From the NCBI RefSeq assembly GCF_902713615.1, contig NC_052157.1:76201411-76265410 (forward strand): DNA of 64,000 nt, read 5' to 3'. Both the position numbers and the translations under genes were made by a program. The notes under the pieces were generated by a model. The model made no database searches, had not been told where the DNA came from, and was given only the letters and a program-made list of their open reading frames with translations. How positions within the stretch are numbered: position 1 is the first letter of the stretch; each line of letters begins with the position of its first letter. Below are positions 5,808 to 54,757 of this stretch, in pieces. The stretch is from Scyliorhinus canicula (Eukaryota).

Positions 5808-5843
5808 CACTTTGTTGAATTTCAGCCTTGAGTTCCTTTATTT
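5808..5843 (-). CDS. Host coiled-coil gene, micro-exon 10 (36 nt, EIKELKAEIQQS)
   Basis: ttgcag|AAATAAAGGAACTCAAGGCTGAAATTCAACAAAGTG|gtgagc; phase 1-1; paralogous to exon 53757-53792. Confidence 0.75.
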
Positions 5844-6254
5844 CTGCAATCACCGTAAAGCATTTGATCAAGAACGTTATATTATGTTTCTCCAGACATT
5901 TATTAGTTTGTCAATTACAGGTTCACGATTGCTAGCAAACGGCCCGATGACAACACAATGGACATGTTTTTAGCAGTTTTCTAGTTGAAGGAATTTGCAG
6001 ATGTATAATTCGACAAAATGTTCCAAATACCTCCGTTGGCATCATGTGGAATGATGCACTATCCTCCATGATAGTAGCTGAGGCAATATAGGACATTCAA
6101 CATCCTATTTGAAGATAACTAGCCCCGGCGGGCATAATTTGAATAGCAAATATAATTTACGTGGAACGCGTCTTTGGCATGAGCCTTTGCAGAAGGCCTC
6201 TGTGTAACTTTAAATTGGCATCAAATAAAGACCACTAACTGGGAGAGATGGCTT

Positions 6255-6605
6255 TAGAACATAGAACAGTACGGCACAGAACAGGCCCTTCGGCCCTCGA
6301 TGTTGTGCCGAGCAATGATCACCCTACTCATGCCAACGTATCCACCCTATTCAAGTAACCCCCCCACCCCCACCACCACACACATTAACCTTATTTTTTA
6401 GGACACTAAGGGCAATTTAGCGTGGCCAATCCACCTAACCCGCACATCTTTGGACCGTGGGAGGAAACCGGAGCACCCGGAGGAAACCCACGCACACACG
6501 GCGAGGACGTGCAGACTCCGCACAGACAGTGACCCAGCCGGGAACTGAATCTTGGACCCTGGAGCTGTGAAGCATTTATGCTCACCACCATGCTACCGTG
6601 CTGCC
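6255..6605 (-). mobile_element. HE1-type tRNA-derived SINE
   Basis: Near-identical (reverse complement) to 53117-53468; tRNA-like head and (TTCTATG)n tail. Confidence 0.9.
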
Positions 6606-7084
6606 TTCTTTTATTATCTTATATAGGAGATCACACATACGGGAGATCGCCACTTTGACACTGCTGGCGAGTGACAGACGCAGTCGAAAACAACGATTCG
6701 TCATTTGGAGCTGCATTTAACACCACGGAATTCAGAAACAGCTGAAAGCTGCGAAAGACGGAGCCAAAGCTGACACAATAAAGACAATGTGGAATAAATT
6801 ATGTAGTTCACCTTCATCTTTTTAAAAGATGGAAACATGTTCAAAAGTATGATTGTTGGTAATTTAAGACAGCAATATCAATATGCATTATAAGCCATTT
6901 GTTAGACCAAAACAGCAGTTAATATCAAACTTAGAATTTTAACTCATCACATTACGTCCTAACAAAGCTGAGATAGATTTTGACTTTTTGATATGGAGCC
7001 TTCATGTAAAACCCAACCAGTGCTCAATTGTTGGTTAGTTTTGGTTTACTGTAGCTGAATATTCTTGCTTTTAATACACTTATA

Positions 7085-9890
7085 GCATGGAAGAAGGTAA
7101 ATACGCATGTGTGCACATTGAAATTGGCGAGTACGATGGTGTGTGTGTTTCACAGAGACGTGGGAACAAGGGTATTATGGCTGGCATCTAAATGTACATC
7201 GATATGTGGTCTATGGAAAGGATAAGCAGATGGGCAAAGGGACGGGGTTGCATTGTTAGTACCGAATTAAGTTAAAAAGAACAGCAAGGCGCGATATAGG
7301 ATCAGAATGCATACCATCTCTGTGAGTAGTGTTGAGCAATGGCAACGGCGAAAAGACCCTCATTGCTGTTATGCAAAAGCACCCTAGCAGTTATCAGGGT
7401 GTGGGGCAGAAAATAAATAATGAGATAGAAAAGGCATGTAAAAAAAGGCAAAGTTGCAATAATCATGGGGGACTTCAATATGCAAGTGGACTGGAAAACT
7501 CAGTATCGTAGTGGATCCTAAGAAGTGGAATTTGTGAAATGTCTGTGGGATATTTATTTGGAGCAGCTTTTGACAAAACCGACGAGGGTGCAAGCAATTC
7601 TGGATGTGCTTATGTGTAATGAGGTAGACTCGATTAGGGACCTTATGGTGGAGGAACGCAAAGGGAGCAGTGAGCACAAAATGATAGAATTTGTCACGTA
7701 GTTTGAGAGGGAGAAGCTTAAATGTGATGCGACGGTATTATAATTAAAACAAGGGTAACTGCAAAGACATGAGGGAGGAGATTATCAATTTTTTTTGGAA
7801 AAATAAGCTAGCAGAGAAGACACTGGAACTGCAATGACAGGACGTTTCGGCTGTTCTTCGGGAGGCACAGCAGAAATTCACCCAAGGAGGAGGAAACATG
7901 CTAATGGGATGACAAGGCATCCATGGTTGAGGAGGGATGTCAAGCTCAGCATGAAAGCAAAATAAACTGTTTGCAAATTGGTGCCGATTAGATGAAGCTA
8001 GAGGATTGGGAAGCCTTGAATAGCGAGATTAAACAATAAGGGGGTAGAAGATGAAATATGAGTGCAAGCTAGCTAGTAAGATGAAAGAAGATGGGAATCT
8101 TATTTTTTAATATTTAAAAGGTAAGAGAGAGGCAAAAATAGACATTGGACCACTCGTAAACGTGGTAAGAGCAGTGATAATAGGAAACAACGAAATTGCA
8201 GACGTACTGAATAGGGACATTGCATAAGTGTTCACCGTGGAAGACACCAGTGGGATGCCGGAGCTCCAGGATAATCAAGAGCCAGAGGTGAGCTTTGTGG
8301 CCGTCATTAATGAGAGGATCTTATGGGAGCTGAAAGTTGTGAAGGTGGATAAATCACCTGGAGCGAATGCACTACAACCCAGTGTTCCAATACAGATAGC
8401 TGAGCTCATTGTGGACGCATTGTTGGTGATCTTTCAGGAATCACTGGAAGAACGGAGGGTTCCAGAGGACGGGAAAGTTGCTAATATAACACCGCTGTTT
8501 AAGAATGGAGGGAGGCAAGAGACGGGAAAATATAGGCTGGTTAGCCTGACTTCCGTTTGATTTTAGATTGCATTATTAAACACCAAATCACGGAGGAGCT
8601 GGAAGTCCATGATAACAAAATTATAAATCGTCAAGGCTATTACAAGGGGAGGTCTTAGCGGACACATATGTGAGAATTATTTGAGGAGGGAACACGTATA
8701 TTCAACAAAGGAGAACCAGTGGTTGTGATTTATTTAGATTTCCAGAAGGTCTTTGACAAGGTACTGCGTAAGATATTTCTAATTTAGTTAAGAGCCCATG
8801 GTGTATGGAGAACATCCTGGTATGGATAGAGGGTTTTCTGACTGGCTGAAGGCGGAGCGTGGGGATAAGGGAGTATTTTTCAGAGTGGTGGCCGGTAAAT
8901 TGTGGTGTGCCTCATGAGTCTGTGCTCGGAACACATCTTCTCACAATGTATATTAATGATCTGGAAGACGGAACTGAATGCACTGTTTCTAAGTTTTCAG
9001 ATGATGCAAAGATCTGGAGATGTTCAGGTGGTATTGTGGAAGCACGAGGGCTGCGGAAGGACTTGTACAGACTCGAAGAGGGGGGAAAGAAATGACAGCT
9101 GGTATGCAATGTTGGAAAGTGTTAGGTTGTGCACTTTGGAAGGAGGAATCGACGCACAGAATACCTTCTAAATGGGGACATACTTAGGAATTCAGAAGCA
9201 CTAATGTTCTTGACATATTGTTCAAGATTGTTAAGGTTAACGTGCAGTTTCCGTCGCCAGTTACGAAGGCAAATGTAATCATAACATTCATGTCTAGAGG
9301 AATGGTTTACAAGACCAGGGATGTTCGACTGAGGCTGTATAAACTTTGGTCAGACAGCATTTGGAATGTTGTACACAGTGTTGGGCCCAGTACTAAAGTA
9401 AAGATGTGCGGGTCTTGGAAAGGGCCGAGATGATATTCACAAGAAAGATCCCGGGAATGAAGAATTTGTCATATGAGGGACGGTTGAGGACCATGGGTCT
9501 ATTCCCGTTGGAGTTTAGAAGGATGATGGAGAATCTTGTTGAAACGTACAGGATACTACGCGGCCTGTGTAGAGTGTACATGGAGAGGATGCTTCCAGTT
9601 GCAGGAAAAATAGAACCAGAAGACAGAATATCAGACTAAAGAGACGATCCTTCATGGCAGAGAAGAGGAGAAATTTCTTCTGAGTGTTGAGCTCTGCCGC
9701 AGAAGGCTGTGGAGGCCAAATCACTGAGTGTCTTTGAGACAAAGGCAGACACATTATTGAATAATAAGTAGGTCAGCGGTGTTGGGGAGAAGGCCAGAAG
9801 AAAGGGAATGGCAAAATATCAGCCGAGTGAATGGCGAGGCAGACTCGATGGGCCGAGTGGCCTCCTTCTGCTCTTATGACTTATGGTCTA
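7085..9890 (+). mobile_element. CR1-type LINE, ORF2 (APE+RT) and 3' UTR, degenerate
   Basis: IIMGDFN, KSPG, ANITPLFK.G, YRLVSLTSV, YLDFQKVFDKV, YINDL, SKFSDD. Confidence 0.92.
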
Positions 9891-11072: not shown

Positions 11073-12519
11073 TGAAATTGAATTACTGTTTGATTATAAC
11101 AAGGATGTGTTAAAATATGTAATAAATACAACTGGATAACAGCAAGTTAGTAACTGCTACGCGCTTTGATTGTCCATCCTCCACTCACAAACACAAAACA
11201 AACATGAGGGGGGTTAAAATATTGAGGATGCGGGTCAAAAGATTGCTTAAAATAGTGGTTTTTGTCTTGTTCACTAACAATACGCTTGCACGTCTCAGTC
11301 TACGTTCGCCAAGCTGTACTCAAATATCTCGGAGAAATCGTGCCCCTGCTTCATCAAACTTTCCTTTCAGCTTGTGGCCTGTCTTCAGTAATTGTATTTT
11401 AAGTAATGCAAAACCCACATGCTTAATGGGGAGAGAGGTAGCCGGTTATATCTGGAGAGAATTACGAATTACTGGATAAAATCAGTAGATTCTGATTTTT
11501 TTCTTTAAGCATCCTTTAATGGTGCTGGTGTAGATAGATTCGTCCATATTCCCTACCAGTTCACAAACATAGTGTTTCATTTTCCTTCCGCTTCCATTTG
11601 TGATACGTGCTTCGTTGTAAGTACATGTCCATATATCATCCTTGGATCACAAATAGAACTGCAAAAATGAGAGAAAGGGCGGAATATGGAAAGGAACAGA
11701 AATGTTACAGTGCATAGCAAATTCAATAGATGTTCTCTATGATAATGCTCAGAAAATAGTGAAAGAAGTAACCTCGGCAAACAAAATCTGTAACTGTATG
11801 TATCTAACCCGTTCACAGTCGTCTATTTAAATCAATTATTTGTTGAATAGGCTACCTTTTTCACTGTATTTCAACTTTTCACCTTTTAAGGAATAACGGA
11901 AGAGGAAAATTTTGCGATTCTTGAGGAAGTGAAACGTTTAGAAATCACAATGCAAGTTTGGCAGAGCATTCCGAATGCAATTGTTAACACTGGGAACATG
12001 TTGCAGTGAGCATACAGTTGCAGCGTTGACAGACAGCCATGCATCTTGGCATTGGTTTTCAGGGTTAAACTAACGCGCATGCCACAACCGTCCATTCAAC
12101 GCCGCGAACGATAACCACCTGAGGCAACTCAACTCCTAATTCATCCGAAGTGTTCACTTTGGGGAGACTCACGACGGAACATGCACATCTGACCAAATTT
12201 TCAACACTTAGTACTACATCTCTGCTCTTGCACTACGATCTGTTTCAACGATTTATCTTGTATGGACGTTGGACACCTCCTCGTTTTACCAACGTATATG
12301 GACATTGGGAGAGTGTAGAAGATGTAACTGCTCATTTTTTAGTACTTTACTTAAGTTCACAGCGCTGGAAACCTGGCATTTTTCAATTCCCAGGAGAGCA
12401 GATACGTTGGCTATTTGATGAATTATTCCTTTTTAATGGGACGCTCATTCTTGGGGAAGTACTTTACAATAAATTGCCTCAACGTTAATTACGTTTGGAA
12501 ACTAGGTGGCAGGGAAATA

Positions 12520-12880
12520 AAGTAATTGCACGTCAAATCAGAGGGATTGGGCTGAAGAGTAGCGGGGCGAAAAGAACGTCGGGTTCGTTTCACCGCCGGC
12601 GGTTTTCTCGTTGCACCGGCAGTGCACCTAACCCACAGGTTTCCGGGCGGCGTGGTTTGGCTAAAATACGAAATCTCATTGGTAGATGGCAGGAATGGAG
12701 TGCCCAGTTCATAGTACGTGTTTGGGAAAATTGAGAATGAATAGAGGCAGGGCGCAAACTAAGGCATCGTTCATTGGTCGATGCATCTGTTATCCAGACA
12801 ACGTTTAGGCCAATACGTTTAATTTCCCTACTCTGCATTTTTTTTAATATGCGCGCTCTTCGAAAGAGATGGTAGTATAT
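12520..12880. promoter_or_regulatory. CpG-rich promoter-like island
   Basis: Four CCAAT/ATTGG boxes (12546, 12678, 12773, 12810), overlapping Ets and GC boxes TTCCGGGCGG (12641-12650), RFX-like GTTATCCAGACAAC (12789-12802); locally CpG-rich and non-repeat. Confidence 0.45.
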
Positions 12881-13574
12881 CGGGCAGAAAATGTCTTAAA
12901 TAAATTAGCAAATTGCTGCACACCTGCATCCTTTAAAGCGTCTTGGCAGACTTGCAACTCTGGAATGGCAATACATGAGAGCTAAGCATGTTGTCAACAT
13001 TCCTCAGAGAAATCCCTTCCCCGATCCCCCCTCCCCAACCATGCCCAATCATCGAACTCTCCACTACACTGTTTATCAATTGCAGCACATAAAATGGCGT
13101 TCGAAAACCGCTCAAGGTATTCCCATGCAGCGACTGCATCTCGTACGTTCATTCGTTGCATTCGAAGCACCACTGTCAAGGTCAACAGCACGGTTACACT
13201 CAATGTTCTATGATTCATATTCGTACATCTCGAAGCTCATGTTTGACAGCCATTGTGTATTGCGTTTTAAGTAAAAGCAAAAGTTAATAATTACACCGTG
13301 CTGGAATTTCAGGATAATTCCGAGCCAGGCTGTATTTGAGTGCAGGTCCGCAGCGAAATGCAACTTTATCCTAAGTCCCGTCGGTAGACTTCTCCAAATG
13401 ATCAGCGGAATGGTGCTGAGTATGGTATTTGCATTGACTGTTTTTGAAAATTAAACTTGTATATAGCAGTGTAACTCACATATTTTTGGCGAGGTAAGAC
13501 TCATTTACTTGTTTGCGGCATTGCATCTTGCCAATGAATGATATACGGGTGAAGCCATATATTTACAGAGCCTA

Positions 13575-14227
13575 ATAAAATCAAAATAATAAATGCTGCT
13601 GAAAACTAGCCTTTCCGGGGGCATTTGAGGTGAGCAGCAGATGATCTAATTGCCGCTTCTCGAGTACTTTGTCCATAGTTTCCTATTTTTATTTAATATT
13701 CTCGGCGTCCCCAGGAGTATGCTCTTATTTCAAATAATAATTACAGTTCAGCTGGACATTACCTGTTTTTGCCTTCGTTCTGCCATTTTAACTTTTCATC
13801 ATAAGTTTGTTCAAATATGTATGTTGCAGTTCAGAATGTTCCGATACATCCCAGATCTAAAGGTGTTTGATCATTCTTATTATGGTACTTTGAGTATGTT
13901 ATAATCTCTCTATGTGCCACCAGCAGCACCATTCTTAGACATAATCAACCACATTTACGTTCCATCTGTCTTCTGTCCTCCACATGTTTGTCAATGTCTG
14001 GCCTTCTATCCGGCGGCATCGGTACATGAACCTCCTCACCCTCCACACAACAGTATCAATCTGCCCCATATGACGTTCTCTATCGATTTGACAAAGAGGC
14101 ATCAATACTCGAAACGTTAGTTCTCGCATATGTCCATCGATGCTGTCAGACCTGCTAAGATTGCCTAGTATTTTGTTGCTGCTGTTTTTGTTTCAGATTC
14201 CGACATCCGCCATAATTTGCTTTTATA
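13575..14227 (+). mobile_element. Penelope-like element remnant with degenerate hammerhead terminus
   Basis: 14085-14227 matches 50151-50282 and 61983-62105; a short degraded inverted copy may lie at ~13575-13640. Confidence 0.55.
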
Positions 14228-14974
14228 TTCGAAAAATTAGTATGACTTCGCTAGCCTCGACTGCTGGTTCGTGATGCAAGGCCAGCTAGCAGCGGTGGTT
14301 GCATTTACCGTGCCACCTGAATTTAATCCCTTCACACATATCAACCAGGATAGAATGGTGGAGGAGGCCCGATGTGCCCGAAGGCCTAATTCTGCTCGTA
14401 TATCGTATGAACCTGTGAACTATGACACTAAACACATTGCCTGAGGTGTGGGGAATGCGCTGGTTATATCACCAACACTCTGCTCTCCACTTCAAAGTGG
14501 AATGCAGAGAAGATTGTCCGACTCCCAAAGATTTACAGCACAACGCCCACGCTATCGATCAGCTGCCTCAATCCACCGTTGTTTCTGCAAAAAGGAGCCA
14601 CCAATTTACTTTCATTTATTATCCTCCAAGAAAGTAGGCCCTTCAGAAAGCATTGATGGCCATTCACTTCGAAATGAATTTGGCCCTGATTGCGTTTTGT
14701 ACACACCTACAGTGGTTTGTCGTTTCTTGCATCTGACGGCTAACTAGGTATCTATTCCGGAGTGTTAACCCACAATTAGGGCTTTTGGAGGGCGTTACCG
14801 TGTGAAAGCCAACTTGCTTGTCGACGTGAAAGCACAGCATGCTTTGAAGCGGGAAAATCGGACATGCTCACGAAGTTTCTGACGGAAATATTCTGAACCA
14901 CCACAGCTACCAAATGTCCCTTCATTTACATATATATCAGCAAAGCTGTCATTTCATCCACATTATAATTGTAA

Positions 14975-15248
14975 TAATAATAATAATCTATATTGCCACA
15001 AGTAGGGTTACATTAACACTGCAATGAGTTGCTGTGAGTAGCCCCTCTTCGCCACGTTCAGGCGCCTGTTCGGGTACACAGAGGGATAATTCAGAATGTA
15101 CAAATTACCTAATCCGGAAGTATTTCGGGGACTTGTAGGAGGAAACCGGAACATCCGGAGGATACCCACGCAGACACAGGAAGTACGTGCAGACTCCTGG
15201 GACTCTGGATCTGTGAAGCAACAGTGCTACTACTGTGCTACCGTGCTG
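14975..15248 (-). mobile_element. tRNA-derived SINE, family 2 (CTTCATTGCAGTGTTAATGTAA...CTTGTGACAATAAA tail)
   Basis: Reverse-complement match to 17189-17495. Confidence 0.8.
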
Positions 15249-15249
15249 C

Positions 15250-15348
15250 TATTATACAATACAACATAATACAATCTAATAGAATATAATACAATGTAAT
15301 ATAATATTATATATATATATATATAATATATATATCAGAGAGAGAGAG
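15250..15348. repeat. AT-rich, (AT)n and (AG)n microsatellite
   Basis: Directly visible. Confidence 0.85.
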
Positions 15349-15619
15349 TACTTCGGTTTAAGATGGATCAGTTGAATACCTCATGCACATGATTAGTTTA
15401 CACTTTATATAGATTGTCATTGCGCTCGCGCTTTTTATGATCCTGTATCTGAAAATGTGCTCTCTCAACGCTGACCTATCAATCACTGGAATATGCTTCT
15501 ACTGCAGCTAATGCTGACTGTATATTTCACCGAGTCGAATTGCAAAACGTCCAAGCGAATACAAAATAGACAATTTGAATTGAGCAACAACTCAATGGCC
15601 TATAAGTATTAAAAACTAC

Positions 15620-15646
15620 CGGCGTCTTTTGCTTTGATTTTTTCGC
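15620..15646 (-). CDS. Host gene micro-exon 9 (27 nt, GEKIKAKDA)
   Basis: ttcttttctttcacattgacaccggaacag|GCGAAAAAATCAAAGCAAAAGACGCCG|gtagtt; weak donor, but size, phase and heptad register fit. Confidence 0.62.
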
Positions 15647-17188
15647 CTGTTCCGGTGTCAATGTGAAAGAAAAGAATATAAAATGTATAATATTTTATGA
15701 GTTCGAGGAGTTGCATCACCGGTCAAATAACATTCCCAACTTGATGCTTGGTCGATTCAAGTTTATTAAAATTATTCGTCTGTCTGCGGAGCCGACTACT
15801 AGTTGAGGGCTATGCAACAAATAATGATGGCACATGATATATTGCGCCTAATTGGTTAGTTCGATTATTTTATATTTTGCGCAGTTTGGTTGTTTTGATT
15901 GAAGTAATCAGAATCTAAAGTCAGCCTTTCACCATTTAACTCGGGCTTGCGTTTATAGTTTCCTATTGAACAAAGAAACAAACATTTTCAAAATAATACG
16001 GCAAAACGACTGCCAAAAATAAATGCCCACCTAAATCTTTTCGAGATCTTTGGCAATCGTTCAGCTCTTTAATACATAAAATGAAAAGTCCAAATTGAAA
16101 TATCAGAAAAATGCCTGGTGTCGAGCAACTTATATTGTATACTTCGAGAGATTATGGTTACTATAAGATGTGTTGATGTCATGACTTGAGTGTGCAGGGC
16201 AGAATTTCACAATTCGTAAAAATCAACAAACTGTGAATTGCGAGAAAGACCAATAACGTACGTTAAAATATCTTAGAGGTCCTGAGTAATGGGATAACAC
16301 GTCACAGTTGATATTTTAGGGAGGCATATGAGTTGATCCATTTAGGCAAATAGGGCCAATGGACGACGTTGAACAACAATACAAGGCAGATTAATCTGTG
16401 GAGGGAAATGAGACGTATGTGCGTACAACCCCGTTGAACGAGGCAGAGAAAATCCAGGACGTAGTTCCTGAAGCACGCAGTATCTGGGATTTCTAAAATG
16501 AGCAATTAGGAACGAAAGCAAATAATTTGTGACAACCACACAGAAAGCGAAGTGTCTGCCTAACTTGGAAAATTGTGTCCATCTTTAGAGGTAACAGTTT
16601 TCAAGATCAGAGTACGTTAAAAGTCTTTGAGAATATTGTTTAGGGATGCTCAAGCACGAGGAAATATAGCAACGGGAGAGGACTGGGAAATATTGGGCCG
16701 CCCCACGGAAAAAAAACGGGGCTGAAATTAGTTTTGATGAAGCTATTAATTTTCATTAACGTGATCGAAATGCAAAATGTTTCACATTATAAATGGTCAG
16801 GAAACCGTAGACAATAATTTATTGTCAATTGGGGAATAACACGATTTCGTGGCTGAAGGAAAAATGTGCAGCGGATGAATACACTCCGGCATGTACTGCC
16901 TACGATTGTTTTTGAGGAATGCTCGTTAAATATAATTTGCAACACTGTTGCGAATGGTTAGAGGGATTGGAATAATTAATTATTCATTTAGACAGCGAGG
17001 TTCTGCATAAGATAATATAGTACAGCCTGCAATGTATTCGATCTACAAGAAATAACATTTTGATTTTTATTACAAAATCATAATTTCTGTTCCACTCGTG
17101 CAGTGTTCTCCCTCGCGGTTAGCTGCACAGGATAAACCTCCGAAGTAATGAGTGCGCATAGAGCTGTCTCCCTAGAATTGCCTGCTGA

Positions 17189-17495
17189 GCGGCACGGTAG
17201 CGCAGTGGTGAGTAATGTTGCTTCACAGTGCCAGGATCACAGTTCAAATTTCCAGCAATGGTCACTGTCTCCGCGGAGCCTGCACGTTCTCCACATGCCT
17301 GCGTGTGTTTCGTCAGGCTGCTCCGGTTCCTCCACAAGATCCGAAATACGTGCTTGTGAGGTGAATTTCACTTTCTGACCTCTCCCTCAGTGTATGCGAA
17401 CAGGTTGCCGAATGTGGCGACTGGGTTCTTTTCATATTGATTTAATTGCAGTGTTAATGTAAACCTACTTGTGACAATAAAGATCATTACTATAA
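17189..17495 (+). mobile_element. tRNA-derived SINE, family 2
   Basis: GCGGCACGGTAGCGCAGTGG head, conserved core, family-2 tail. Confidence 0.85.
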
Positions 17496-18086
17496 TATGT
17501 TGGAGGCGTGAGTAAATCCCTGGTGAAGAAGAACTCATTGTTATTCTTGACTCCGAATATGACTGATGTGCGAGATTCGGGATTAGCAGACTGGTTGGCA
17601 CTTACAACATCCGTATCATTATCGGATAACAGCGCGTTAATCGCTTTGTAGTTTAGGTTTCTCTGTTGGAAACTTCTACAGTCTCTGACACAAACCAACG
17701 AGGTGATAACCAGTATGTAATGTCAATGGGAAATTTGTTTATGATAGCTTCACCCACGACACGATTCAAGGAATCCTTTCATGCATTCATGCATTCCTTT
17801 CATGATGTCCTTTTTTAGCTTTGTGCAGTAACTTAGGAATCAAAATCACGTGTAATAAATGTCTGCGTTTTGATTTTCAGTTCGCAACAATTCACACACT
17901 TATGCCCTCCCGATTGAAAGGTGATAAATACATTTTACAGTTATGAATTCCTGGAAACACCAATCCTGCTCCCTCTGCACATTGCTACTCGCCAAACTGA
18001 ATGTGAAATTGCTCAGACATAAATAAGTAAATGCGTGACATATAAAGCGTGCCCGTCCAGTTGCACAAGAAGAAGTCTAATCTTAC

Positions 18087-18325
18087 CTGCAAGGGTAAAA
18101 ATCATAACTTCAATGACAAGAAAGGAAGACAATTTATTTGTTGGTTCTATTGCAGGAAGAAAAGTCGTTAAATAACCGTACATAGCTCCTCCTTCTTCGG
18201 TGTTCTGCTGTTCACATGGGTACGCGAGCGAGAGTCTGCGGATGATTTCCAGGGTTCCTTAAAAGCCTTTAAGCAAAAGAAAAACAATCATTTTATAAAG
18301 ATACCACCGCTTTCTACCTGATTGG
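18087..18325 (-). promoter_or_regulatory. Candidate internal promoter and phase-1 leader exon (MYGYLTTFLPAIEPTNKLSSFLVIEVMIFTLA)
   Basis: On the minus strand: CCAATCAG (18325-18318), TATAAAA (18297-18291), ATG at 18183, donor CAG|GTAAGA at 18087/18086. Confidence 0.35.
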
Positions 18326-18596
18326 ACCACTTTTTTCTTACTGATTGTCCAGGTTCCAAGGGAAAAAAGCATCAGGAAGGGACAATGGAACGATTCCAGA
18401 CACGATATGGCTATCTATCAAAAGTGGCAAGTGTGCTCAAAAGCGGCGCTCTACAGTAAATAAATGTCATGGTTTTTTGGACTGTGACGCGGTATTATCT
18501 CAAAACTGAAAACCACATTAGGTATAATGGTCATTGACCATCAAGGCAATACACTGATACCTGAGATGACAGAGGAGTGTATGTAACGGCAAATAG

Positions 18597-18835
18597 AAGC
18601 ATAGTGGTAGTTCGGCCACAGTCTGTGCAGTGTCTGCATGTTCTCCCTGTATCTGTGTGGTTTTCCTCTGGTTGGTCCAGTTTCCTCCCACATGTCCCGA
18701 AAGACGTGCTGTGAGGTAATTTTAACGTTCTCACTTCTCCCGGAAAATGCGCTGCAATGTGGCGACGAGCGCCTTTTCACTATAACTTCATTGCAGTGCT
18801 AATTCATGTCTGCTTGCGAAAATAAGGTTAATTAC
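18597..18835 (+). mobile_element. SINE family 2, degenerate
   Basis: Core and tail similar to 17189-17495. Confidence 0.75.
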
Positions 18836-19593
18836 TTAATTAATTTTGAAGTTGATTGCATGTATAATGCATAGTTACTCTGATTGCAGGCAAAATACGT
18901 TTTGACGTCAGCTTTCCTTTAATCAATTTAAATGTTAGTGTCTTAGAATCTGCTTTCCCTGACCTTTTTTTATTTTTTCTGTAAAAAAGCAAATGAAACT
19001 TAACGTGTACACGACGTACAGCGGAAATATTAGCCTTGTAAGTAAAATCGAATTAGCCAACAGCGCAGTGTCAATGGACACGTCATGAGGTAGAAATGTG
19101 GATATGTTGTGTCTGGAATGGTATAGTTCATTGTTCGTTGAAAACCCTGCACTCTATCTGCTGTTAACTGCTACAGTGCTACCTCTCTTTCGGACAAAAC
19201 AACAATAATTGTTCACAATTACTTTCCACGTACATCGGAGTAGTGGTATTCATGGGGAAAAAACGGCACGCCATGAAACATTAAGTCCACAACCGGGAAT
19301 TTATCTTACATTCCGTGCCGGGCTTCCCCAGATGTTTGCTTTACATAAAAGCTGATAACATTTAAAAAATGTAGTAAAGTGAAGACGACTCCGGACTTGC
19401 ATAACGTGTCGAATTTAATTGCGTCAATTCAATACCTACATTAATGATTTCAGTTTTGGATAGTTATGTATACCGAACTATAACATGTAGAAAGTACATT
19501 ATATGCCCAACCTAACATGTTCTAATTCACTGTAGTTAGAGCTACCGAACGTAATTATGGCAATAGATTGCTACTGCCCAATTCAATGTCATC

Positions 19594-19765
19594 AAATGAA
19601 AATTGTTTATTGTCACAAGTAGCTTCAAATGAATTTACTGTGAAAGCCCCTAGTCGCCACATTCCGGCGCTTGCTCGGGGAGGCTGGTACGGGAATTGAG
19701 CCGTGCTGCTGGACTGCCTTGGTCTGCTTTCAAAGCCAGCGATTTAGCCCGTATAAACCAGCCCA
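19594..19765 (-). mobile_element. Short tRNA-derived SINE (family 3) sharing its 3' tail with family 2
   Basis: Minus strand reads GGGCTGGTTTA...GGCTCAATTCCCGTACCAGCCTCCCCGAGCAAGCGCCGGAATGTGGCGACTAGGGGCTTTCACAGTAA; tail also seen at 27513-27610. Confidence 0.75.
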
Positions 19766-37360: not shown

Positions 37361-37459
37361 GTATGACCAGAAGGCGTGTTCTATGCATTCTATCATATTA
37401 CCCAGAACAGCATGAGCTCATATTTTTAAATTGCATTTCAGGTGGAACTTTACCGAACA

Positions 37460-42469: not shown

Positions 42470-43097
42470 CTCTCTGTATGATTCTCTCTCTCTCCAGCCA
42501 TCTCTCTCTCTCCCTTTGTCTCTGCCACTCTTTCGCTCTGTCACTGTCTCTTTCCCTCAATCTCCAGCCTTCTCACTGCTTATCATCGGCCACCCCGTTC
42601 TCTCTCTCTGCTCTCCATACCTCTCTACTTTATCTTTCGCATTCTCTCTCTCACTCCAACCATCTCGCACACTCACGAGCCATATTTCCCTCTCACCGGC
42701 CATCTCTCAGTCTCTCCAACCATCTCTCTCTCTCTCTCCAGCCATCTCTCTCTCATCAGCCATCTCTCATCTCTCTCTAGCCATCTCTCTCTCTCTCCAG
42801 CCATCACTCTCTCTCTCCAGCCATCTCTCTCTCATCAGCCATCTCTCTGTCTCTCTCTCCAGCCATCTCTCTCTCTCCAGCCATCACTCTCTCTCTCCAG
42901 ACATCTCTCTCTCTCTCACCAGCCATTTATCTCTCTCTCTCTCCAGCCATCTCTCTCTCTCCAGTCATCTCCAGCCATCTCTCTCTCTCTCTCTTCAGCC
43001 ATCTCTCTCTCTCTCTCTGCAGCCATCTCTCTATCTCTCTCCAGCCATCTCTCTCTTTCTCTAGCCATCTCTCTCTCTCTCGATCCATCTCTCTCTC
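42470..43097. repeat. (CCAGCCAT(CT)n) minisatellite, homopyrimidine-rich
   Basis: Directly visible tandem units. Confidence 0.95.
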
Positions 43098-43619: not shown

Positions 43620-45418
43620 AATGTGTTTCTATCAATGTGAGCGTTTGTGTGTGTCTGTGTCAGTGTGAGTGTGCTTGTGTGTCTGTGTCAGTCTGAGAGT
43701 GTTTGTGTGCCTGTATCAGTGTGAGTGTTTGTGTCTGTGTCAGTGTGATTATGTTTGTGCGTGTGTCAGTGTGTGTGTTTGTGTATCGGTGTCAGTATGA
43801 GTGTCTTTGTGTGTCTGTGTCAGTGTGAGTATATTTGTGTGTCTGTGTTTGTGTGCCTGTGTCAGTGTGTGTGTGTCTGTGTCAGTGTGAGTGTGTTTGC
43901 GTGCCTGTTTCAATATGAGTGTGTTATCATGAGTGTGTTGTATGTGTGTCATTGTGATTATCTTTGTGCGTCTGTCATTGTGTGTGTGTTATTATGAGTG
44001 TGTTTGTGTGTGTCTGAATGTGAGTGTGTTTGTGTGTGTATCAGTGTGAGAGTGTCTGCGTGTGTGTCAGTGTGAATGTGGTTAAGTGTGTGTGTTTTTG
44101 TTTGTGTGTGTTTGATGTGTGTGCCGTTGTGTGTCTGCGTGAGTGTGTTTGTGTGTGTATCACTGTGGGTGTGTTGTGTGTCAGTGTGAGTGAGTTTCTG
44201 TGACTGTGTCAATGTGATTGTATTTGTGTGTTCGTATCAATGTGAGTGAATTTGTGTGTCAGTGTGACTTTGTCTGCGAGTTGTGTGTCAGTTTGAATGT
44301 GTTTGTGCGTGTCAGTGTGTTTTTGTGTTTCTGTTTCAGTTTGAGTCTGTTTGTGTGTCTGTGTCAGTGTGAGTGTGTTTGTGTGCGGGTGTCATTGTGT
44401 GTGTTTGTGTGTCAGTGTGAGTGTATTTGTGTGCCTGTGTCAGCGTGAGTGTGTTTGTGTGCCTCTGTCAGTGTGACTGTGTTTGTGTGTCTGGGTCAGT
44501 ATGTGTGTTTGTGTGCGGGTCAGTGTGTGTAATTGTGTGCTGTTTTATGTGTCAGTGTATGTTGTTGTGTATGTCAGTGCGAGGTGTCTGTGTGTGTGTG
44601 TCAGTGCGAGTGTGTTTGTGTGTCTGTGTCTGAGTGTGTTGCGTGTCTGTGCATGTGAGTGTGTTTGTGTGCCTGTGCCAGTGTGAATGTGTTTGTGTGT
44701 GTGTGACTCTGTGTGTTTTTGAGTGTATGTCAGTGTGAGTGTGGCTGTGTGTTAATGTGAGTCTGTTTCTGTGTCAGTGTGAGTGTGTCTGTGACAATAT
44801 GAGTGTGAATGTGTGTCTGTGTCAATGTGAGTGTTACTGAGTGTGTGTCGGTGTGTGTGTGTTGTGTGCCTGTGTCAGTGTGAGTGTGTTTGTGTGCCTG
44901 TGCCAGTGTGAGTGTATTTGTGTATCTGGGTCAGTGTTAGAGTGTTTGTGTGCAAGTGTCAGTGAGTGTTCTTGTGTGTCTGGGTCATCATGTGTGTTTG
45001 TGTGCGTGTCAGTGCGTGTAGTTGTGTATTGTTTTGTGTGTCAGTGGGTGTTGTTGTGTGTGTCAGTGCGATTGTGTTTCTCTGTGTGTGTCAGTGCAAG
45101 TGTGTTTGTGTGTTTGTGTCTGTGAGTGTGTTGCGTGCCTGTGAGTGTGTTGTGTTAGTGTGTGTGTGTGTCTGTCAATGCGAGTGTGTTTGTGTGCCTG
45201 TGTCAGTGTGAATGTGGTTGTGTGTGTGTGTCAGTGTGTGTGTTTGTGTGTATGTCAGTATGAGTGTGGCTGTGTGTAAATGTGAGTGTGTTTGTGTGTC
45301 AGTTTGAGTGTGTTTGTGTGCCTGTGTCAATGTGAGTGTGACTGTGTGTCTGTGTCAATGTGAGTGGCAGTGAGTGTGTGTCAATATGTCTGTCAGTGTG
45401 TCAGTGTGTGTGTTGTGT
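43620..45418. repeat. ~1.8-kb GT-rich degenerate satellite (unit approx. GTGTCAGTGTGAGTGTGTTTGTGTGT)
   Basis: Directly visible. Confidence 0.95.
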
Positions 45419-45419
45419 G

Positions 45420-48560: not shown

Positions 48561-48936
48561 CTATATTAATATTTCCTGGTTGTTTCTAGTTAACGCATAC
48601 ACTTAACATGACCTTATATTCTCATTTGATGTCAAACACTTATTACTCAAGGTTGACCGAGTTCCACGTTGTGACCTTTATCCATGTCCAGAAGTAAAGG
48701 CTGGATGCATAATTGGATACATTGACGACGATCTTGCACTCATATAAATTACTCTAATTTTCACTACATCGCAAGTGAAAATGCCTCCTGTCCGTCTTGT
48801 CGAACACATTTCCACCATAAGGCCCTTACTAACATACGTTATTTCTGAATGTTATTCAAAAAAACGATGGCACATTGAAGCAAAGCAATAATTGCTACAT
48901 GGAAACACTTATGAGTTACTGTGAGGAAATTACAAC

Positions 48937-48963
48937 CTTTTTCTTTTACGTTATAAGATCCTT
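48937..48963 (-). CDS. Host gene micro-exon 5 (27 nt, EGSYNVKEK)
   Basis: gttgttttcacccttgtaaacag|AAGGATCTTATAACGTAAAAGAAAAAG|gttgta; weak donor, fits size and register. Confidence 0.62.
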
Positions 48964-49605
48964 CTGTTTACAAGGGTGAAAACAACAATGTTAAATTAGT
49001 TCAAGTAGTTCGAGGTCGTTTAAGGGTATTGGGATTGATGGAAGTACGAACTAACACCGAGATTATGAGTGAATGATTGAACCAAAGAAAAGAAACTTTG
49101 CTGCAAACTTTCCCCAATCACCCTTGTTTTGGCCTGCATAATTTGTAGCACATAAAATATTGCAAATTATCTGCACTTTGCCTTTAACCATGCGCTACTG
49201 GATCATTCCTCTGTGATGCACCATAATGATATATTCAGAGCGGTCAATGGAACAAAATATATGTGTTTTCCCAGATCAAAGGTTTTAGTGCAAAGCATTG
49301 ATCTGTGTAACAAGACAAATTAACGTTCGAGGAACTCTATTCCAGCATAAAAAACGATGGGCACACAAATTGGCTTGTGACGCATCTGCTGGATTATTAT
49401 ATCAAACAATTTTGACACTTGTATTTGCGTCACATCATGGCAAAACGTTCAAAACTCCATTCACTTATTTCTTGTCATAATTCAGAATTATATCCTGGCG
49501 TGTTTAGAGTATCTTTGAAACATAATGCAATACAACTTACAACACATGAAATAAATTAAATGATTCATTATAACAAGTAAATAGATGAACGATTATATTT
49601 CTCAC

Positions 49606-49641
49606 CTAAATCTTTCAGTGATGTTTGGCAGATGCTCAGAT
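49606..49641 (-). CDS. Host gene micro-exon 4 (36 nt, DLSICQTSLKDL)
   Basis: ttttactgtattgtag|ATCTGAGCATCTGCCAAACATCACTGAAAGATTTAG|gtgaga. Confidence 0.78.
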
Positions 49642-50150
49642 CTACAATACAGTAAAATAACAATCCAGCATTTAATGGGTGTGAGCAGTGGCGTCGTCAG
49701 CTCCTTAAGATAGAGGAACTCGAAAAATAAACAAAGAATATGATATATTTATCATGTAATTCAACATCTTTGGCAGGGGAACAGAAAAACAATTTGAGCG
49801 ATGTGAATATCCATATTTTTTAAATATAAATATAATGTGTACACTATTCTTTTATTTCCCCCTTCAATATCTATCCAACCGAAAAGTTCCAATCAACGGT
49901 CAATTCTCTGTTCTTGTCTACTTCAGTGCAGTGGTAAAGAAGATTGGCAGGCTCGACAACCAGAATGATGCAGACATGCATAAATGTGTTCCGCCGGCCA
50001 GAGGTCTGATAAATGTGGTGCGTTAATTAGAATCCCGGTGCAATGCGATGTTGTAAAGCCATGCTTTTCAATTGATGGTTGTTGGATCGAACATACCATC
50101 TGCTCCTGGAACCAAAGACAGAATGATGAAACATCTCAGCAGGTATGGGC

Positions 50151-50282
50151 TTTGACAAAGCGTCATCTGGACTCGAAACTTTAGCTCTTTTCTCTGCTAA
50201 CAGATGCTTTCAGGCCTTCTGAGATTTCGCAGCATTTTTTATTTGCTTTCAGATTCAAGCATCCGCAGTAATTTGCTTTTAT
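50151..50282 (+). mobile_element. Penelope-associated short repeat with degenerate hammerhead core
   Basis: TTTGACAAAGCGTCATCTGGACTCGAAAC…CAGATGC…TTTCAGATTC…CATCCGCAGTAATTTGCTTTTAT; three copies in the window. Confidence 0.7.
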
Positions 50283-51017
50283 ATTCGCCTGCTGCCATTG
50301 CCACAGACGCGACGGCACCCAAACAACTCTGTAAGCTATCTGGTGGAACACAGAACATCGCTCAATGGATGGATTTTTTTTTTTACAATCATGTTTCGGT
50401 TAATAAATGCAATCAAAGCAATCTCGCGGTATCAGAAGATCTCTCACGCTGGATAGAAACTATGGATTTCGACAGACCGCCTTTTTTTTCTGCGAGCGCA
50501 AGGGAAGACAAGAAATTCACTCATGGTATCTGTTTCTCGCTGGGCCATCTCTCAGTGCCATGGAACTGAGCTCTGGAAATGCCATCCGAGTTTCAACCAC
50601 ATTGGCGTTAGTGCAGTAACATACAGGTCAACCCATATAAGGATAGCATGTTAGCTGCCCGAAAGATATTGTTGAATCACATGGAATTTTACAATAATTG
50701 ACAAGAGTCATATTGAACTATTCATTTTCGATTATAGAAAATATGTATGTATAACATTCAGCATATACAGTGATGGATTATGAACATAGGTCCACAGAGT
50801 ATTAAGCAGAAAAGCAAGGGTAAATTATTCCTCATTGTTTCGTCATTTCGGAGGCTCCATCAATCCAATTTTACTTTCAAAAGAATTAGAAACAATGTAC
50901 GAGCTACTTCCGTTAATATTTGTCATTCCCACGAATTTCCAAGGAATTCTTACTGTGCGGAAAATTGCAGTTCGGGCTATCGCATATGCTCTGGTGCTAC
51001 CAAAGGCTCTAACTTAC

Positions 51018-51032
51018 CCGTCGATATTTTAT
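51018..51032 (-). CDS. Host gene micro-exon 3 (15 nt, DKIST)
   Basis: ttgttttctgattcacag|ATAAAATATCGACGG|gtaagtt. Confidence 0.75.
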
Positions 51033-52492
51033 CTGTGAATCAGAAAACAAATACATGTGTCAAAGGACAGATGCACCCTTTATGTTCCTTGCATAAGGGC
51101 ATTGCAATGTCCACTATGTAAATATATCAAATAGGTTTCCATCAGTAAACAGACGGTCAAATCATTTAACTCGTGGTTACTGGCTTGAAATAATAAAACC
51201 ATGATCAGGGTGGATAGCTGTATCTTTACCTCACGGCTCCACTTCGCAAATTTGCAAATCGGGAATGAGCGCAATACACTTATCTTTTGTGGATGCGCTC
51301 ACGTTGGTTATATATGACCATTCAATTGAATGGAGACAGTAAATTGCCTTGTGAGGGTTCACACAATGTCCAAGAGATTTGGCACCACCCCAAGAGAAGT
51401 AGTGAACATATTTTGATTCAAAAAGAGACAAAGCCCTCCACTCAACATACCGTGATTCGGGCCCAAAACATAGCGATGTCTTTGGAGAATATTTGAACAG
51501 ACGCAGATTCAAATTAACTTCGGGCCATGGACTTCGCTGAATTACATTCGTTGAAAAAGATGCACTTGTGGATACGAGTCGGATGCAAATATAGGGCAAT
51601 CGATCATTTTGGTCGGATCCGTATTTCAATTAAACCATGATTCGCCTGCTTGTAAGCTGAAGTCATCATTGCCAATCATGCTGGAAACCGTCTACCTTTA
51701 CCTGAAGAGTGTGTTCAGAGGTTGACCGTCTTTTGAGGAAGAGACCATAAAAGCTCAGTGCCATTTGACAAAAAATAATGAGCGCCCCATTCTTTTAAAT
51801 TGCGGCGCCGTGTTCTCATTATCAAACAAAAACATGTACACCCGCCAATTCTGAGTCACTCGAATTACCCTTCCAAGGTCATTTGGAGGTTAGATGTCTC
51901 AATTACTCCTCTTTCAATCCACTAGACATGTAATGTGCAAAACATTAAGCCGATTCAATGAAAACTTTGCCTTTATGTGCTACATTTGCAATATAAAAGC
52001 AAAACTGATGGGGTTATTGTCAAATTATTACATTTTTGATTTTTCTAAATCCGTACTGAATGAACGTGGAGCAGACACTTAATGTTGAACAGCGTCCCAT
52101 CTGAAATAGTAAGACACTATCACCGCCAATTTTTTTGCAATGATATTCTTGCCGGTTAAATATTGGTGCAGGCCAACATGTATCCACATTTATGCCCGAC
52201 GAAGTACATCACACCACATCAATTCTCTGAAGGAGGATACAAATATTTGAGCAATATTTCACAATGGAGCCGAACTCCCAATCTGTTATCTCAAACAACA
52301 CGCACAGGCACTAACATCACTCACGGTGCAGCGCCACTAATTCTCCCATGTCACAATCAGTGTCTCTCAATCGTATTGTACATGAATCCTGATGGATTTT
52401 ACCCCAACACATAACAATAATGGCCATTCGAGTGACTGAGAAGGCTCTCCGGATAATTCACGTGTTATGCGTTCAGCGGGCTTTTCCAGTAA

Positions 52493-53667
52493 TAAGAACA
52501 TAAGAACATAAGAACTAGGAGCAGGAGTAGGCCATCTGGCCCCTCGAGCCTGCTCCGCCATTCAATTAGATCATGGCTGATCTTTTGTGGAATCAGCTCC
52601 ACTTTCCGGCCCGAACACCATAACCCTTAATCCCTTTATTCTTCAAAAAACTATCTATATTTACCTTAAAAACATGTAATGAAGGAGCCTCAACTGCTTC
52701 ACTGGGCAAGGAATTCCATAGATTCACAACCCTTTGGGTGAAGAAGTTCCTCCTAAACTCAGTCCTAAATCTACTTCCCCTTATTTTGAGGCTATCTCCC
52801 CGAGTTCTGCTGTCACCCGCCAGTGGAAACAACCTGCCCGCATCTATCCTATCTATTCCCTTCATAATTTTAAATGTTTCTATAAGATCCCCCCTCATCC
52901 TTCTAAATTCCAACGAGTACAGTCCCAGTCTACTCAACCTCTCCTCATAATCCAACCCCTTCAGCTCTGGGGTTAACCTAGTTAATCTCCTCTGCACACC
53001 CTCCAGCGCCAGTACATCCTTTCTCAAGTAAGGAGACCAAAACTGAACACAATACTCCAGGTGTGGCCGCACTAACACCTTATACAACTGCAACATAACC
53101 TCCCTAGTCTTAAATTGGGCAGCAGGGTAGCATGGTGGTTAGCATAAATGCTTCACAGCTCCAGGGTCCCAGGTTCGATTCCCGGCTGGGTCACTGTCTG
53201 TGTGGAGTCTGCACGTCCTCCCCCTGTGTGCGTGGGTTTCCTCCGGGTGCTCCGGTTTCCTCCCACAGTCCAAAGATGTGCGGGTTAGGTGGATTGGCCA
53301 TGCTAAATTGCCCGTAGTGTCCTAATAAAAGTAAGGTTGGGGGGGGGGGTTGTTGGGTTACGGGTATAGGGTGGATACGTGGGTTTGAGTAGGGTGATCA
53401 TGGCTTGGCACAACATTGAGGGCCGAAGGGCCTGTTCTGTGCTGTACTGTTCTATGTTCTATGTTCTAAACTCCATCCCTCTAGCAATGAAGGAAAACAT
53501 TCCATTTGCCTTATTAATCACCTGTTGCACTTGTAAACCAACCTTCTGTGACTCATGCACTAGCACACCCAAGTCTCTTTGAACAGCGGCATGCTTTAAT
53601 ATTTTATCGTTTAAATAATAATCCCGTTTGCTGTTATTCCTACCAAAATGGATAACCTCACATTTGT
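52493..53667 (-). mobile_element. Young 5'-truncated CR1 LINE with a SINE inserted
   Basis: Open RT C-terminus (MLQLYKVLVRPHLEYCVQFWSP…), (TTCTTATG)n tail. Confidence 0.95.
53117..53468 (+). mobile_element. HE1-type SINE nested in the CR1
   Basis: tRNA-like A and B boxes (GGTTCGATTCC), conserved core, LINE-derived tail. Confidence 0.93.
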
Positions 53668-53756
53668 AAATATACATACATATACATACATACAATGTAT
53701 GCTGTAATGGACACATCATTTAAAGGTGTTCGGCTATGTTTTTATAGTCTGCTCAC

Positions 53757-53792
53757 CTAATTGTTCCACTCTATATTTCAATGTTTCTATTT
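53757..53792 (-). CDS. Host gene micro-exon 2 (36 nt, EIETLKYRVEQL)
   Basis: atttttgtttcag|AAATAGAAACATTGAAATATAGAGTGGAACAATTAG|gtgagc. Confidence 0.78.
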
Positions 53793-54424
53793 CTGAAACA
53801 AAAATATGCTCAGATGCATTCGTTCAATACAATTTCAATCATTTGATACCTGGGATGCTTTCTAATTGGTAACATCTCTGCTTGTGAATTCCAACAACTT
53901 CAATTCTTCGTGCAACATCTCTCCAATTTTAAATATAAAATGAAAGATCAAGTCGCGCCTATCAAGACGTAGAGACATGCCAAAGTATTTTCGTTACTAT
54001 TTGGACTGTACCTGGCCTATAATTTCGGAACTTTAGCATGAGGTAGCATCGAACAGTTTGCAAATAGCAAATAGATATCAATTATATATTCAATATTAAT
54101 TACGTTGCATGACGGCTGGTAATGCGGCAGAAAAAAATGAAAACTAATTTTACTGGTTGTTGTAACAACATGTGCCAATTTATATCAATGTAGGATGTAA
54201 ACGTATGCCAGGTGTCTATTTTTAAAATCTGAAATATCACAAATTCGGCAATGATTTGCTTGGAAGAACTGTGTGTTGTCGTCCGGAGATTGAGCATCAT
54301 TCGGTGTTGCGCGAAAACATAACAGGACTTTGTCGTTCAGGATTTAGTTTGCTGTACTCGAAGTTTAGACTGACACTAACGTACACTAATTAATTTTGTT
54401 GCTATGGAATACGCAATCGAGTCA

Positions 54425-54680
54425 TTTAATTCCTCCATTGCAGAAGGGAGTCATTTTGTCCTTGGAGTCTACCCCGACCCTCTGAAAGTGGGCAGTACCA
54501 TATCCTCGTAATTAAACCTAAGTTGTAAATCTTTGGACACATCAATGCAACCTGTACATATTTGGACTTGAGAGTAAACCGCAGCACCCGAAAGAAATCC
54601 AGGCAGACAGGGGGAGTCTCCCAAAGTCCAAATTTAACCCGAGTTCCTGGGGCTTTGAGGCAGCAATGCCGTCCCACATG
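54425..54680 (-). mobile_element. Degraded SINE
   Basis: Weak match to the HE1-type core. Confidence 0.55.
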
Positions 54681-54730
54681 TTTAATCAATGCAAAAATAT
54701 GAGCTTGGAGGGGCGAATTGTGTAATTTAC

Positions 54731-54757
54731 CTCTAGTTTTGTCATTGAGTTCATTTT
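54731..54757 (-). CDS. Host gene micro-exon 1 in this window (27 nt, ENELNDKTR)
   Basis: ctgtctcctgcctcttgcag|AAAATGAACTCAATGACAAAACTAGAG|gtaaat. Confidence 0.75.

Follow-up and report, generated by a model that had tools for sequence, protein, structure and literature searches.

A candidate array of 14 minus-strand micro-exons, probably from a coiled-coil gene, in a genomic window of Scyliorhinus canicula

The window analysed here is a 64-kb stretch of Scyliorhinus canicula DNA, and a candidate micro-exon array of 14 units, all on the minus strand, extends across 49 kb of it. The AG and GT borders were intact at 14 of 14 units, and all of the units are in phase 1. An open frame was found in 13 of them, the exception being a 37-nt unit at 20054-20090, and the length was likewise a multiple of three in 13 of the 14. 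The order of the units is strictly alternating over the whole array, with a short unit (27 or 15 nt) being followed each time by one of the 36-nt class. The repeat of the array is a two-exon module, in which a short linker comes first (type A of 27 nt or type C of 15 nt) and a 36-nt exon second, the latter being of type B or of type D, which bears a Cys. An A exon together with B or D (27+36 nt) gives 21 residues, that is three heptads, and C together with D (15+36 nt) encodes 17 residues, made up of two heptads and a three-residue stammer. The gaps between the units (the predicted introns) are 0.4-10.6 kb long and have transposons within them.

Ten of the units belonged to the original prediction, with sizes of 27, 36, 15, 36, 27, 36, 15, 37, 27 and 36 nt. 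All ten were recovered on the minus strand with these sizes, each preceded by AG, followed by GT and ending in G, and none of them overlapped with the repeats found by self-BLAST of the window, in agreement with the claim that they lie in non-repeat DNA. The strict (27-36-15-36)n period and the junctions 20054>15646 and 15620>5843 did not hold, because four units had been overlooked (18964-18978, 16031-16066, 12924-12959 and 11856-11882) and these fall between the segments that were to be joined. Growth by a four-exon cassette was also given up, as slot 2 of the second cassette (38329-38364) is occupied by a D-type and not a B-type exon. It is because of the four added exons that we describe the two-exon module, rather than the four-exon cassette, as the repeat.

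Read from 5' to 3' on the minus strand, the array begins with the 27-nt linker exon A1 (54731-54757, ENELNDKTR), which has AG/GT borders, a final G, splice scores of 8.5 (acceptor) and 7.3 (donor) and a hydrophobic residue at position 4. It is followed by the 36-nt heptad exon B1 (53757-53792, EIETLKYRVEQL) with a donor score of 9.7 and hydrophobic residues at positions 2, 5, 9 and 12. The 15-nt linker exon C1 (51018-51032, DKIST; acceptor 4.6, donor 10.7) precedes D1 (49606-49641, DLSICQTSLKDL), a 36-nt Cys-bearing heptad exon that matches D4 in 27 of its 36 nt. The next 27-nt linker exon, A2 (48937-48963, EGSYNVKEK), has a weak donor (-0.4) and is therefore the least convincing unit; it is located 642 nt past D1, in line with the other D-A pairs. 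D2 (38329-38364, ELSDCHELLSKF), also a 36-nt Cys-bearing heptad exon, was assigned to the D type by alignment of the family. The second 15-nt linker exon, C2 (29689-29703, ENIKT; acceptor 4.5, donor 10.7), shares with C1 the sequence cacag...GACGG followed by gtaagtt.

The 37-nt unit at 20054-20090 (D3) is D-type and was the best non-training nhmmer match of the D profile (E = 0.18). It carries one extra A, which results in a frameshift and a stop. The originally proposed join of the segments in phase 1 was confirmed as open, and open in that frame only, except at this unit, where the frame is shifted and a stop follows. D3 may be a dead, skipped or mis-assembled exon. Within this unit, position 20083 offers a weak acceptor (score -2.1), the use of which would give a 30-nt in-frame exon (AKCQSSIKDS).

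The remaining part of the array contains the four additions. The candidate 15-nt linker exon C3 (18964-18978, EKIKK; acceptor 8.0, donor 7.7) was added in the short slot between D3 and D4 and shares the Ile at position 3 with C1 and C2; owing to its low-complexity sequence it is the least certain of the four. D4 (16031-16066, ELNDCQRSRKDL; donor 7.6) is an added 36-nt Cys-bearing heptad exon, and the 27-nt linker exon A3 (15620-15646, GEKIKAKDA), which has a weak acceptor (-1.6) and a donor of 4.2, is found 384 nt past it. The other added 36-nt Cys-bearing heptad exon is D5 (12924-12959, ELQVCQDALKDA; acceptor 2.5, donor 8.8). The candidate 27-nt linker exon A4 (11856-11882, GEKLKYSEK; acceptor 3.2, donor 4.7), the last of the additions, is located 1041 nt past D5 and was the top non-training BLOSUM match to the A exons when both strands were considered. 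The added short units C3 and A4 were chosen by score and not by position. The array ends in the window with the 36-nt heptad exon B2 (5808-5843, EIKELKAEIQQS; donor 8.8), in which the hydrophobic pattern is present. Three extra 36-nt candidates (38947-38982, 26324-26359 and 23774-23809) had fair splice scores but no heptad pattern; they would also break the short/long alternation and were left out.

Splicing of the array in silico gave a product of 135 residues that contains no Pro and no Trp and in which K accounts for 17%, E for 14% and L for 12%. The hydrophobic coiled-coil pattern that had been claimed for the shorter peptide was upheld: the power at a period of 3.5 residues in the 135-residue product exceeded that of 2000 out of 2000 shuffles, and periods of 2, 3, 3.6 and 4 gave no signal. 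Among the seven 36-nt exons, a hydrophobic residue was found at position 2 in 7/7, at position 5 in 7/7, at position 9 in 6/7 and at position 12 in 4/7, with charged residues at positions 1, 6, 10 and 11. Cys is at core position 5 of all D exons, and the core Leu and Ile residues are encoded by several different codons. The predicted product has both the helix-compatible composition and the heptad periodicity of an alpha-helical coiled coil. With Pfam it matched generic coiled-coil families alone, each under its cut-off, and the sequence search of the PDB similarly returned generic coiled-coil matches alone, under the cut-off. On the evidence of the sequence itself, the segments behave like genuine coiled-coil-coding exons, and the units are probably real exons of a coiled-coil gene.

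Comparison of the paralogues with each other showed an identity of 58% within the exon, 44-48% in the adjoining 36 nt and 22-31% beyond +/-72 nt. Such exon-limited similarity is to be expected if an exon is under selection together with its splice signals, but not from a recent segmental copy or a transposon. The Nei-Gojobori pN/pS among the paralogues, at 0.82, was not significant (p = 0.13) and did not improve on the values for the two other frames; saturation of the paralogues is probable.

RNA runs, proteins and gene ends were also searched. The RNA runs shared 12-15% of the words of 48900-54800, which fits a repeat at 52504-53668, and this was rejected as evidence of expression. The words of 11800-20200 were in none of the RNA runs among the matches listed. 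Spliced peptides of 117, 59 and 59 aa gave no match at E <= 10 in a set of 5.8 billion proteins, where targets of 0.55-1.75 times the query length, i.e. about 32-205 aa, were covered; a long annotated protein would escape this search because of the length band. Two degenerate DNA patterns for the D exons had no match in metagenome contigs. No match to Ig, transmembrane or SPRY (B30.2) exons was detected among the open stretches of the minus strand between 54.4 and 63.9 kb, and terminal exons of the putative gene, a signal-peptide exon included, were not found in the window, of which the 1-5.8 kb stretch carries an LTR element. A signal-peptide-like ATG segment at 60934-61057 was discarded because it overlaps with an intra-window repeat (60828-61000).

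These results bear on the possibility that the locus is a dead or dying gene, in which once real coiled-coil exons now form a pseudogene without productive splicing or translation. We consider this unlikely. The frameshift and stop in D3, the poor donor of A2 and poor acceptor of A3, the lack of RNA words over 11800-20200 among the listed runs, the lack of a matching protein within the bands of about 32-205 aa, the non-significant pN/pS and the introns full of transposons would all fit it. However, 13 of 14 units are still open, AG and GT are kept in 14 of 14 despite a paralogue divergence of 40-50%, and the core heptad positions are still maintained; a broken symmetric exon, moreover, could be skipped without harm to the remaining transcript.

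It is very unlikely, in our estimate, that the units belong as real exons to a transcript that is non-coding or untranslated, or that they are short, exon-like conserved non-coding elements. The conserved intronic flanks at the D units are consistent with such an origin, as are the lack of a protein homologue in the searched length bands and codon-level selection that is not significant. Against this, the heptad pattern at the amino-acid level draws on several synonymous codons for Leu and Ile, the unit lengths are multiples of three (apart from the 37-nt D3) with one frame open, and if there were no translation it would be difficult to account for a composition in which Pro and Trp are lacking and K, E and L abundant.

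Open AG..GT-bounded segments of 12-60 nt in phase 1 are common in the window, with more than 2000 on each strand, and their mere presence is therefore no evidence. The claimed paralogy of same-size exons was only partly confirmed by comparison with this background. The D-type 36-nt family ("ELxxCQxxLKDL") has five copies, all on the minus strand, and is above chance: its pairs, with 27, 22, 21 and 20 of 36 positions identical, occupy the first four ranks of the 14,964 minus-strand pairs of AG/GT-bounded 36-nt segments left after repeat masking. D1/D4 at 27/36 is the best repeat-masked pair, and the binomial expectation for an identity of at least 27/36 is 3e-5 (24,043 unmasked pairs). The nucleotide identity within the 27-nt (A) and 15-nt (C) families was not above background, and the similarity of the B pair was modest only. 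When a filter on splice score alone was applied, 9 open 36-nt segments passed on the minus strand vs 1 on the plus strand, and 4 open 15-nt segments, C1 among them, vs 0; nothing comparable to the minus-strand array was found on the plus strand. A chance pattern drawn from these thousands of segments, which would be in keeping with their number (>2000 per strand), with the background identity of the A and C families and with our own estimate that 27/36 identity is not rare over all 36-mer pairs of the 64-kb window, is highly improbable in view of the D pairs ranking first to fourth, the splice-only enrichment on the minus strand alone, the strict alternation of 14 units on one strand, the periodicity above 2000/2000 shuffles and the lack of a plus-strand counterpart.

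We consider it likely, on the sequence features described above, that the window covers the middle of a minus-strand protein-coding gene with a rod of at least 14 symmetric phase-1 micro-exons. In this gene, the array would have grown as the two-exon module was duplicated in tandem several times over, and the product would be a coiled-coil stalk of two or three alpha-helical strands. Both gene ends would be located beyond the window. Because the unit lengths are multiples of three and the phase is the same, skipping of units would keep the frame, and the length and sequence of the rod could thus vary through splicing. The locus may serve as a test case for gene finders, with about 400 coding nt over 49 kb that would probably escape ORF-based tools and many model-based ones. 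It would also offer a concrete case in which to ask if coiled-coil geometry is followed by the exon borders and if rod length is tuned through symmetric micro-exons.

Known systems share several of these features. In CD23 (FCER2), every 21-residue repeat has an exon of its own, derived by duplication, and this period equals that of the A+B and A+D modules described here. However, CD23 has one 63-nt exon per repeat vs the 27+36 pair of the present array, its array is short, and its stalk is followed by a C-type lectin domain, a domain not seen in the window. The stalk of CD23 is a heptad-repeat coiled coil that oligomerises the receptor (PMC6791321).

Schistosome MEGs have their coding sequence mostly in symmetric micro-exons of 6-81 nt, with long introns (bioRxiv 10.1101/2023.06.21.545858). 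They resemble our locus in having 10-20 tiny exons, whose length is mostly divisible by three and frequently 15 nt, with long introns between them, in being hard for automatic annotation and in permitting variation by skipping of symmetric exons; the part of the putative gene visible in the window is also built of symmetric micro-exons. In contrast, MEGs are restricted to Schistosomatidae and encode small secreted, largely disordered proteins, whereas a heptad coiled coil is predicted here, in a shark; MEG introns are up to about 5 kb long, and the window yielded no signal-peptide exon. A rather doubtful extension of the comparison is that the locus could be a vertebrate counterpart of the micro-exon genes, lineage-specific and unannotated, with a stalk made from interchangeable two-exon heptad modules and varied rods produced by combinatorial skipping. 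Such rods would differ in length, in register (with or without stammers) and in disulfide pattern.

Butyrophilins (BTN) have "very short exons called heptads", which come after the transmembrane exon and before the B30.2 exon (PMC6790196). These exons are in frame like the units described here, and their skipping in BTN drops single heptads with the frame kept. The BTN heptad exons differ in that they are few, of other sizes and adjoin a B30.2 exon, while the window yielded neither a B30.2 exon nor an Ig or transmembrane exon. Chicken BG cytoplasmic tails have a coding sequence of 13-36 exons, each 21 or 24 nt long, which form sequence groups derived from duplication, vary in number and undergo alternative splicing or read-through (PMC4046983). 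The likeness is in the exon layout, as both have a long run of symmetric micro-exons encoding heptads for a predicted alpha-helical coiled coil. However, the BG exons are 21 nt (sometimes 24), with one heptad each, compared to 15, 27 and 36 nt here; in BG, the array is preceded by exons for an Ig V-like domain and a transmembrane segment, which were not found in the window; and the introns here are up to 10.6 kb. The heptad micro-exon array as a concept is already known, and the candidate array resembles the chicken BG and butyrophilin tails. If transcribed, it would represent a second vertebrate design for an exon-by-exon coiled coil, in which three heptads are split 9+12 over two micro-exons and a 5-residue exon adds a stammer, in contrast to the one heptad per exon of BG and butyrophilins.

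All ten micro-exon candidates of the original prediction were found on the minus strand. In gene order these are A1 (54731-54757, 27 nt), B1 (53757-53792, 36 nt), C1 (51018-51032, 15 nt), D1 (49606-49641, 36 nt), A2 (48937-48963, 27 nt), D2 (38329-38364, 36 nt), C2 (29689-29703, 15 nt), D3* (20054-20090, 37 nt), A3 (15620-15646, 27 nt) and B2 (5808-5843, 36 nt). Each was preceded by a pyrimidine-rich tract and AG, ended in G and was followed by GT, and none (0/10) overlapped a repeat from self-BLAST of the window. The observation is real, but incomplete. Four further units were identified on the same strand: the 36-nt D-type exons D4 (16031-16066, ELNDCQRSRKDL) and D5 (12924-12959, ELQVCQDALKDA), the 27-nt A-like exon A4 (11856-11882, GEKLKYSEK), which matched the A exons best among the non-training segments of either strand, and the 15-nt C-like exon C3 (18964-18978, EKIKK; acceptor 8.0, donor 7.7). 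C3 carries Ile at position 3 like the other C exons; its sequence is of low complexity and it is the least certain unit.

Along the gene the order is A1 B1 C1 D1 A2 D2 C2 D3* C3 D4 A3 D5 A4 B2. These 14 units form seven pairs in which a short exon of 27 or 15 nt precedes one of 36 nt, so that the array repeats a two-exon module and not the four-exon cassette proposed earlier. The 27-36-15-36 size series holds for the first eight units only, the second slot of the second cassette (38329-38364) is D-type and not B-type, and the proposed junctions 20054>15646 and 15620>5843 jump over real-looking exons. The earlier reading was thus wrong in its cassette and in two junctions but right in kind, as the units are probably micro-exons that code for a coiled coil. 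The large introns contain four other open minus-strand AG..GT segments of 36 nt whose splice scores are fair (38947-38982, 26324-26359, 23774-23809 and 23676-23711); they were not counted as members, having neither heptad pattern nor family resemblance, and may include a diverged or alternative exon.

From the sequence we consider it likely that the array forms the central rod region of a coiled-coil gene on the minus strand, grown through successive duplications of a two-exon heptad module, and that the ends of this gene lie outside the window. Joining the 14 units, with D3* read with the one-base correction of the original prediction, gave a product of 135 residues without Pro or Trp and with 17% K, 14% E and 12% L. 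Its hydrophobic power at period 3.5 exceeded that of 2000/2000 shuffles, and no hydrophobic signal was seen at periods 2, 3, 3.6 or 4. In the 36-nt exons hydrophobic residues occupied positions 2 (7/7), 5 (7/7), 9 (6/7) and 12 (4/7), charged residues were found at positions 1, 6, 10 and 11, and all five D exons had Cys at position 5. The linker exons had a hydrophobic residue at position 4 in every A and position 3 in every C. Because of these positions, A + B or A + D yields 21 residues, that is three heptads in which one core position is polar, and C + D yields 17 residues with core spacings of 4, 3, 4, 3 and 3, corresponding to two heptads and a three-residue insertion (stammer). The Leu and Ile codons of the core were varied (CTG, CTC, TTG, CTA, TTA, ATA, ATT). 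Pfam returned generic coiled-coil families alone, all under cut-off (Tup_N, ATG16, Fez1, Tropomyosin), and the PDB sequence matches were equally unspecific. As every unit is symmetric and phase 1, any of them can be skipped without a frameshift; such skipping would vary rod length and register by splicing, and the core-position cysteines could have a role in interchain disulfides.

The same array could now be a pseudogene, which we regard as unlikely. The phase-1 frame claimed earlier was the only open one and the first seven segments read through, but it breaks inside 20054-20090 (D3*), where one extra A relative to the paralogues is followed by a stop. D3* could be a dead exon or the product of misassembly in an A run, or it may be rescued via a weak internal acceptor to give a 30-nt in-frame exon. 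Splice scores were poor for the donor of A2 and the acceptor of A3. Among the paralogues pN/pS was 0.82 (p = 0.13), which is no improvement on the other frames, and the paralogues are probably saturated for this measure. Synonymous versus non-synonymous codon differences were 17/62 in frame compared to 11/79 and 7/71 for the two alternative frames, which leans in the direction of coding.

It is less probable still that the units belong to a transcript that is not translated, or are conserved elements that resemble exons. Spliced peptides gave no match in a search among proteins of about 32-205 aa, and a long protein would lie outside that band. RNA runs shared 12-15% of the words of 48900-54800, a fraction that fits the repeat block 52504-53668. 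This block recurs within the window (near 37455-37607 and elsewhere) and probably explains the sharing by nearly every RNA run of the species. Words of 11800-20200 were found in no listed RNA run.

Chance is a very improbable source of the array, even though open AG..GT phase-1 segments of 12-60 nt number more than 2000 on each strand of the window, so that finding such segments says little by itself. Of 14,964 minus-strand AG|36|GT pairs outside repeats, the top four in similarity all came from the D type (ELxxCQxxLKDL), with 27, 22, 21 and 20 of 36 identities, and the binomial expectation for at least 27/36 was 3e-5 (24,043 unmasked pairs). The LINE region near 57.7 kb contributed to the top plus-strand pairs, which are probably due to divergent LINE copies. 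With a profile from four D exons the best other match was the frameshifted copy at 20054-20090, and nothing comparable was found on the plus strand of the window. When open segments were filtered by splice quality, independently of sequence similarity, the 36-nt segments that passed were nine on the minus strand, B or D exons in six cases, and one on the plus strand; for 15-nt segments the numbers were four and zero, with three of the four C-type.

The claimed paralogy of same-size exons stood for the D-type 36-nt family, but the nucleotide identity of the A and C exons was no higher than background; these two families are supported by splice scores, place in the alternation and residue pattern. 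Mean pairwise identity of the D copies was 58% in the exon, 48% and 44% in the adjoining 36 nt and 22-31% further out. This is the pattern expected of old duplicates that have kept the exon and its splice signals alone, and a transposon or recent segmental copy would not give such exon-limited identity. The 44-48% identity in the 36-nt flanks (e.g. 49570-49605 and 49642-49677), compared to the 22-31% background, may stem from an acceptor region and splice-regulatory sequence that the copies have in common. Shared flanking splice-regulatory sequence has been reported for regulated micro-exons.

Several mobile elements and repeats lie around and within the array. Upstream of A1 a LINE-type retrotransposon lies on the plus strand at 56492-59021 (also given as 56.4-59.0 kb). 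Its three broken reading frames encode an endonuclease (Exo_endo_phos_2) and a reverse transcriptase (RVT_1), and the window contains further, diverged copies, e.g. near 22.2-23.1 kb. An LTR-type retroelement on the minus strand (363-5122; direct repeats 363-925 and 4575-5122) carries integrase C-terminal and Tf2-1 SH3 domains together with open stretches that resemble gag and RT. Most of the window downstream of B2 is taken up by this element, and the next exons of the gene would therefore lie beyond the window. The intron from A2 to D2 (10.6 kb) contains a 1.8-kb TG-rich minisatellite (43632-45419, plus strand, 28-nt unit, ~64 copies) and an adjoining TC-rich tandem array (42643-43097, 20-nt unit), which together cause a local swing in GC skew. 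On the minus strand, an open segment at 60934-61057 begins with ATG and a signal-peptide-like stretch and has a phase-1 donor. It is unlikely to be the gene's first exon, given its overlap with the within-window repeat 60828-61000, which we take to resemble a fish SINE core. The flanks within the window yielded no exon of the Ig, transmembrane, B30.2 or signal-peptide kind.

The closest precedent for the array is the chicken BG genes, in which 13-36 exons of 21 nt (in some cases 24 nt) code for the cytoplasmic tail, with one heptad per exon and jointly a predicted coiled coil; groups of these exons arose by duplication and are alternatively spliced or read through (PMC4046983). Butyrophilins have a few 'heptad' exons placed after the transmembrane exon and before the B30.2 exon, and single heptads can be skipped (PMC6790196). 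The array works like a BG tail but differs from it in the defining exon size, and as its flanking exons lie out of view we leave the relation at likeness. Schistosome micro-exon genes defeat automatic annotation (bioRxiv 10.1101/2023.06.21.545858). The array is no such gene by taxon or by product, but resembles them in its many symmetric micro-exons, often of 15 nt, with long introns between.
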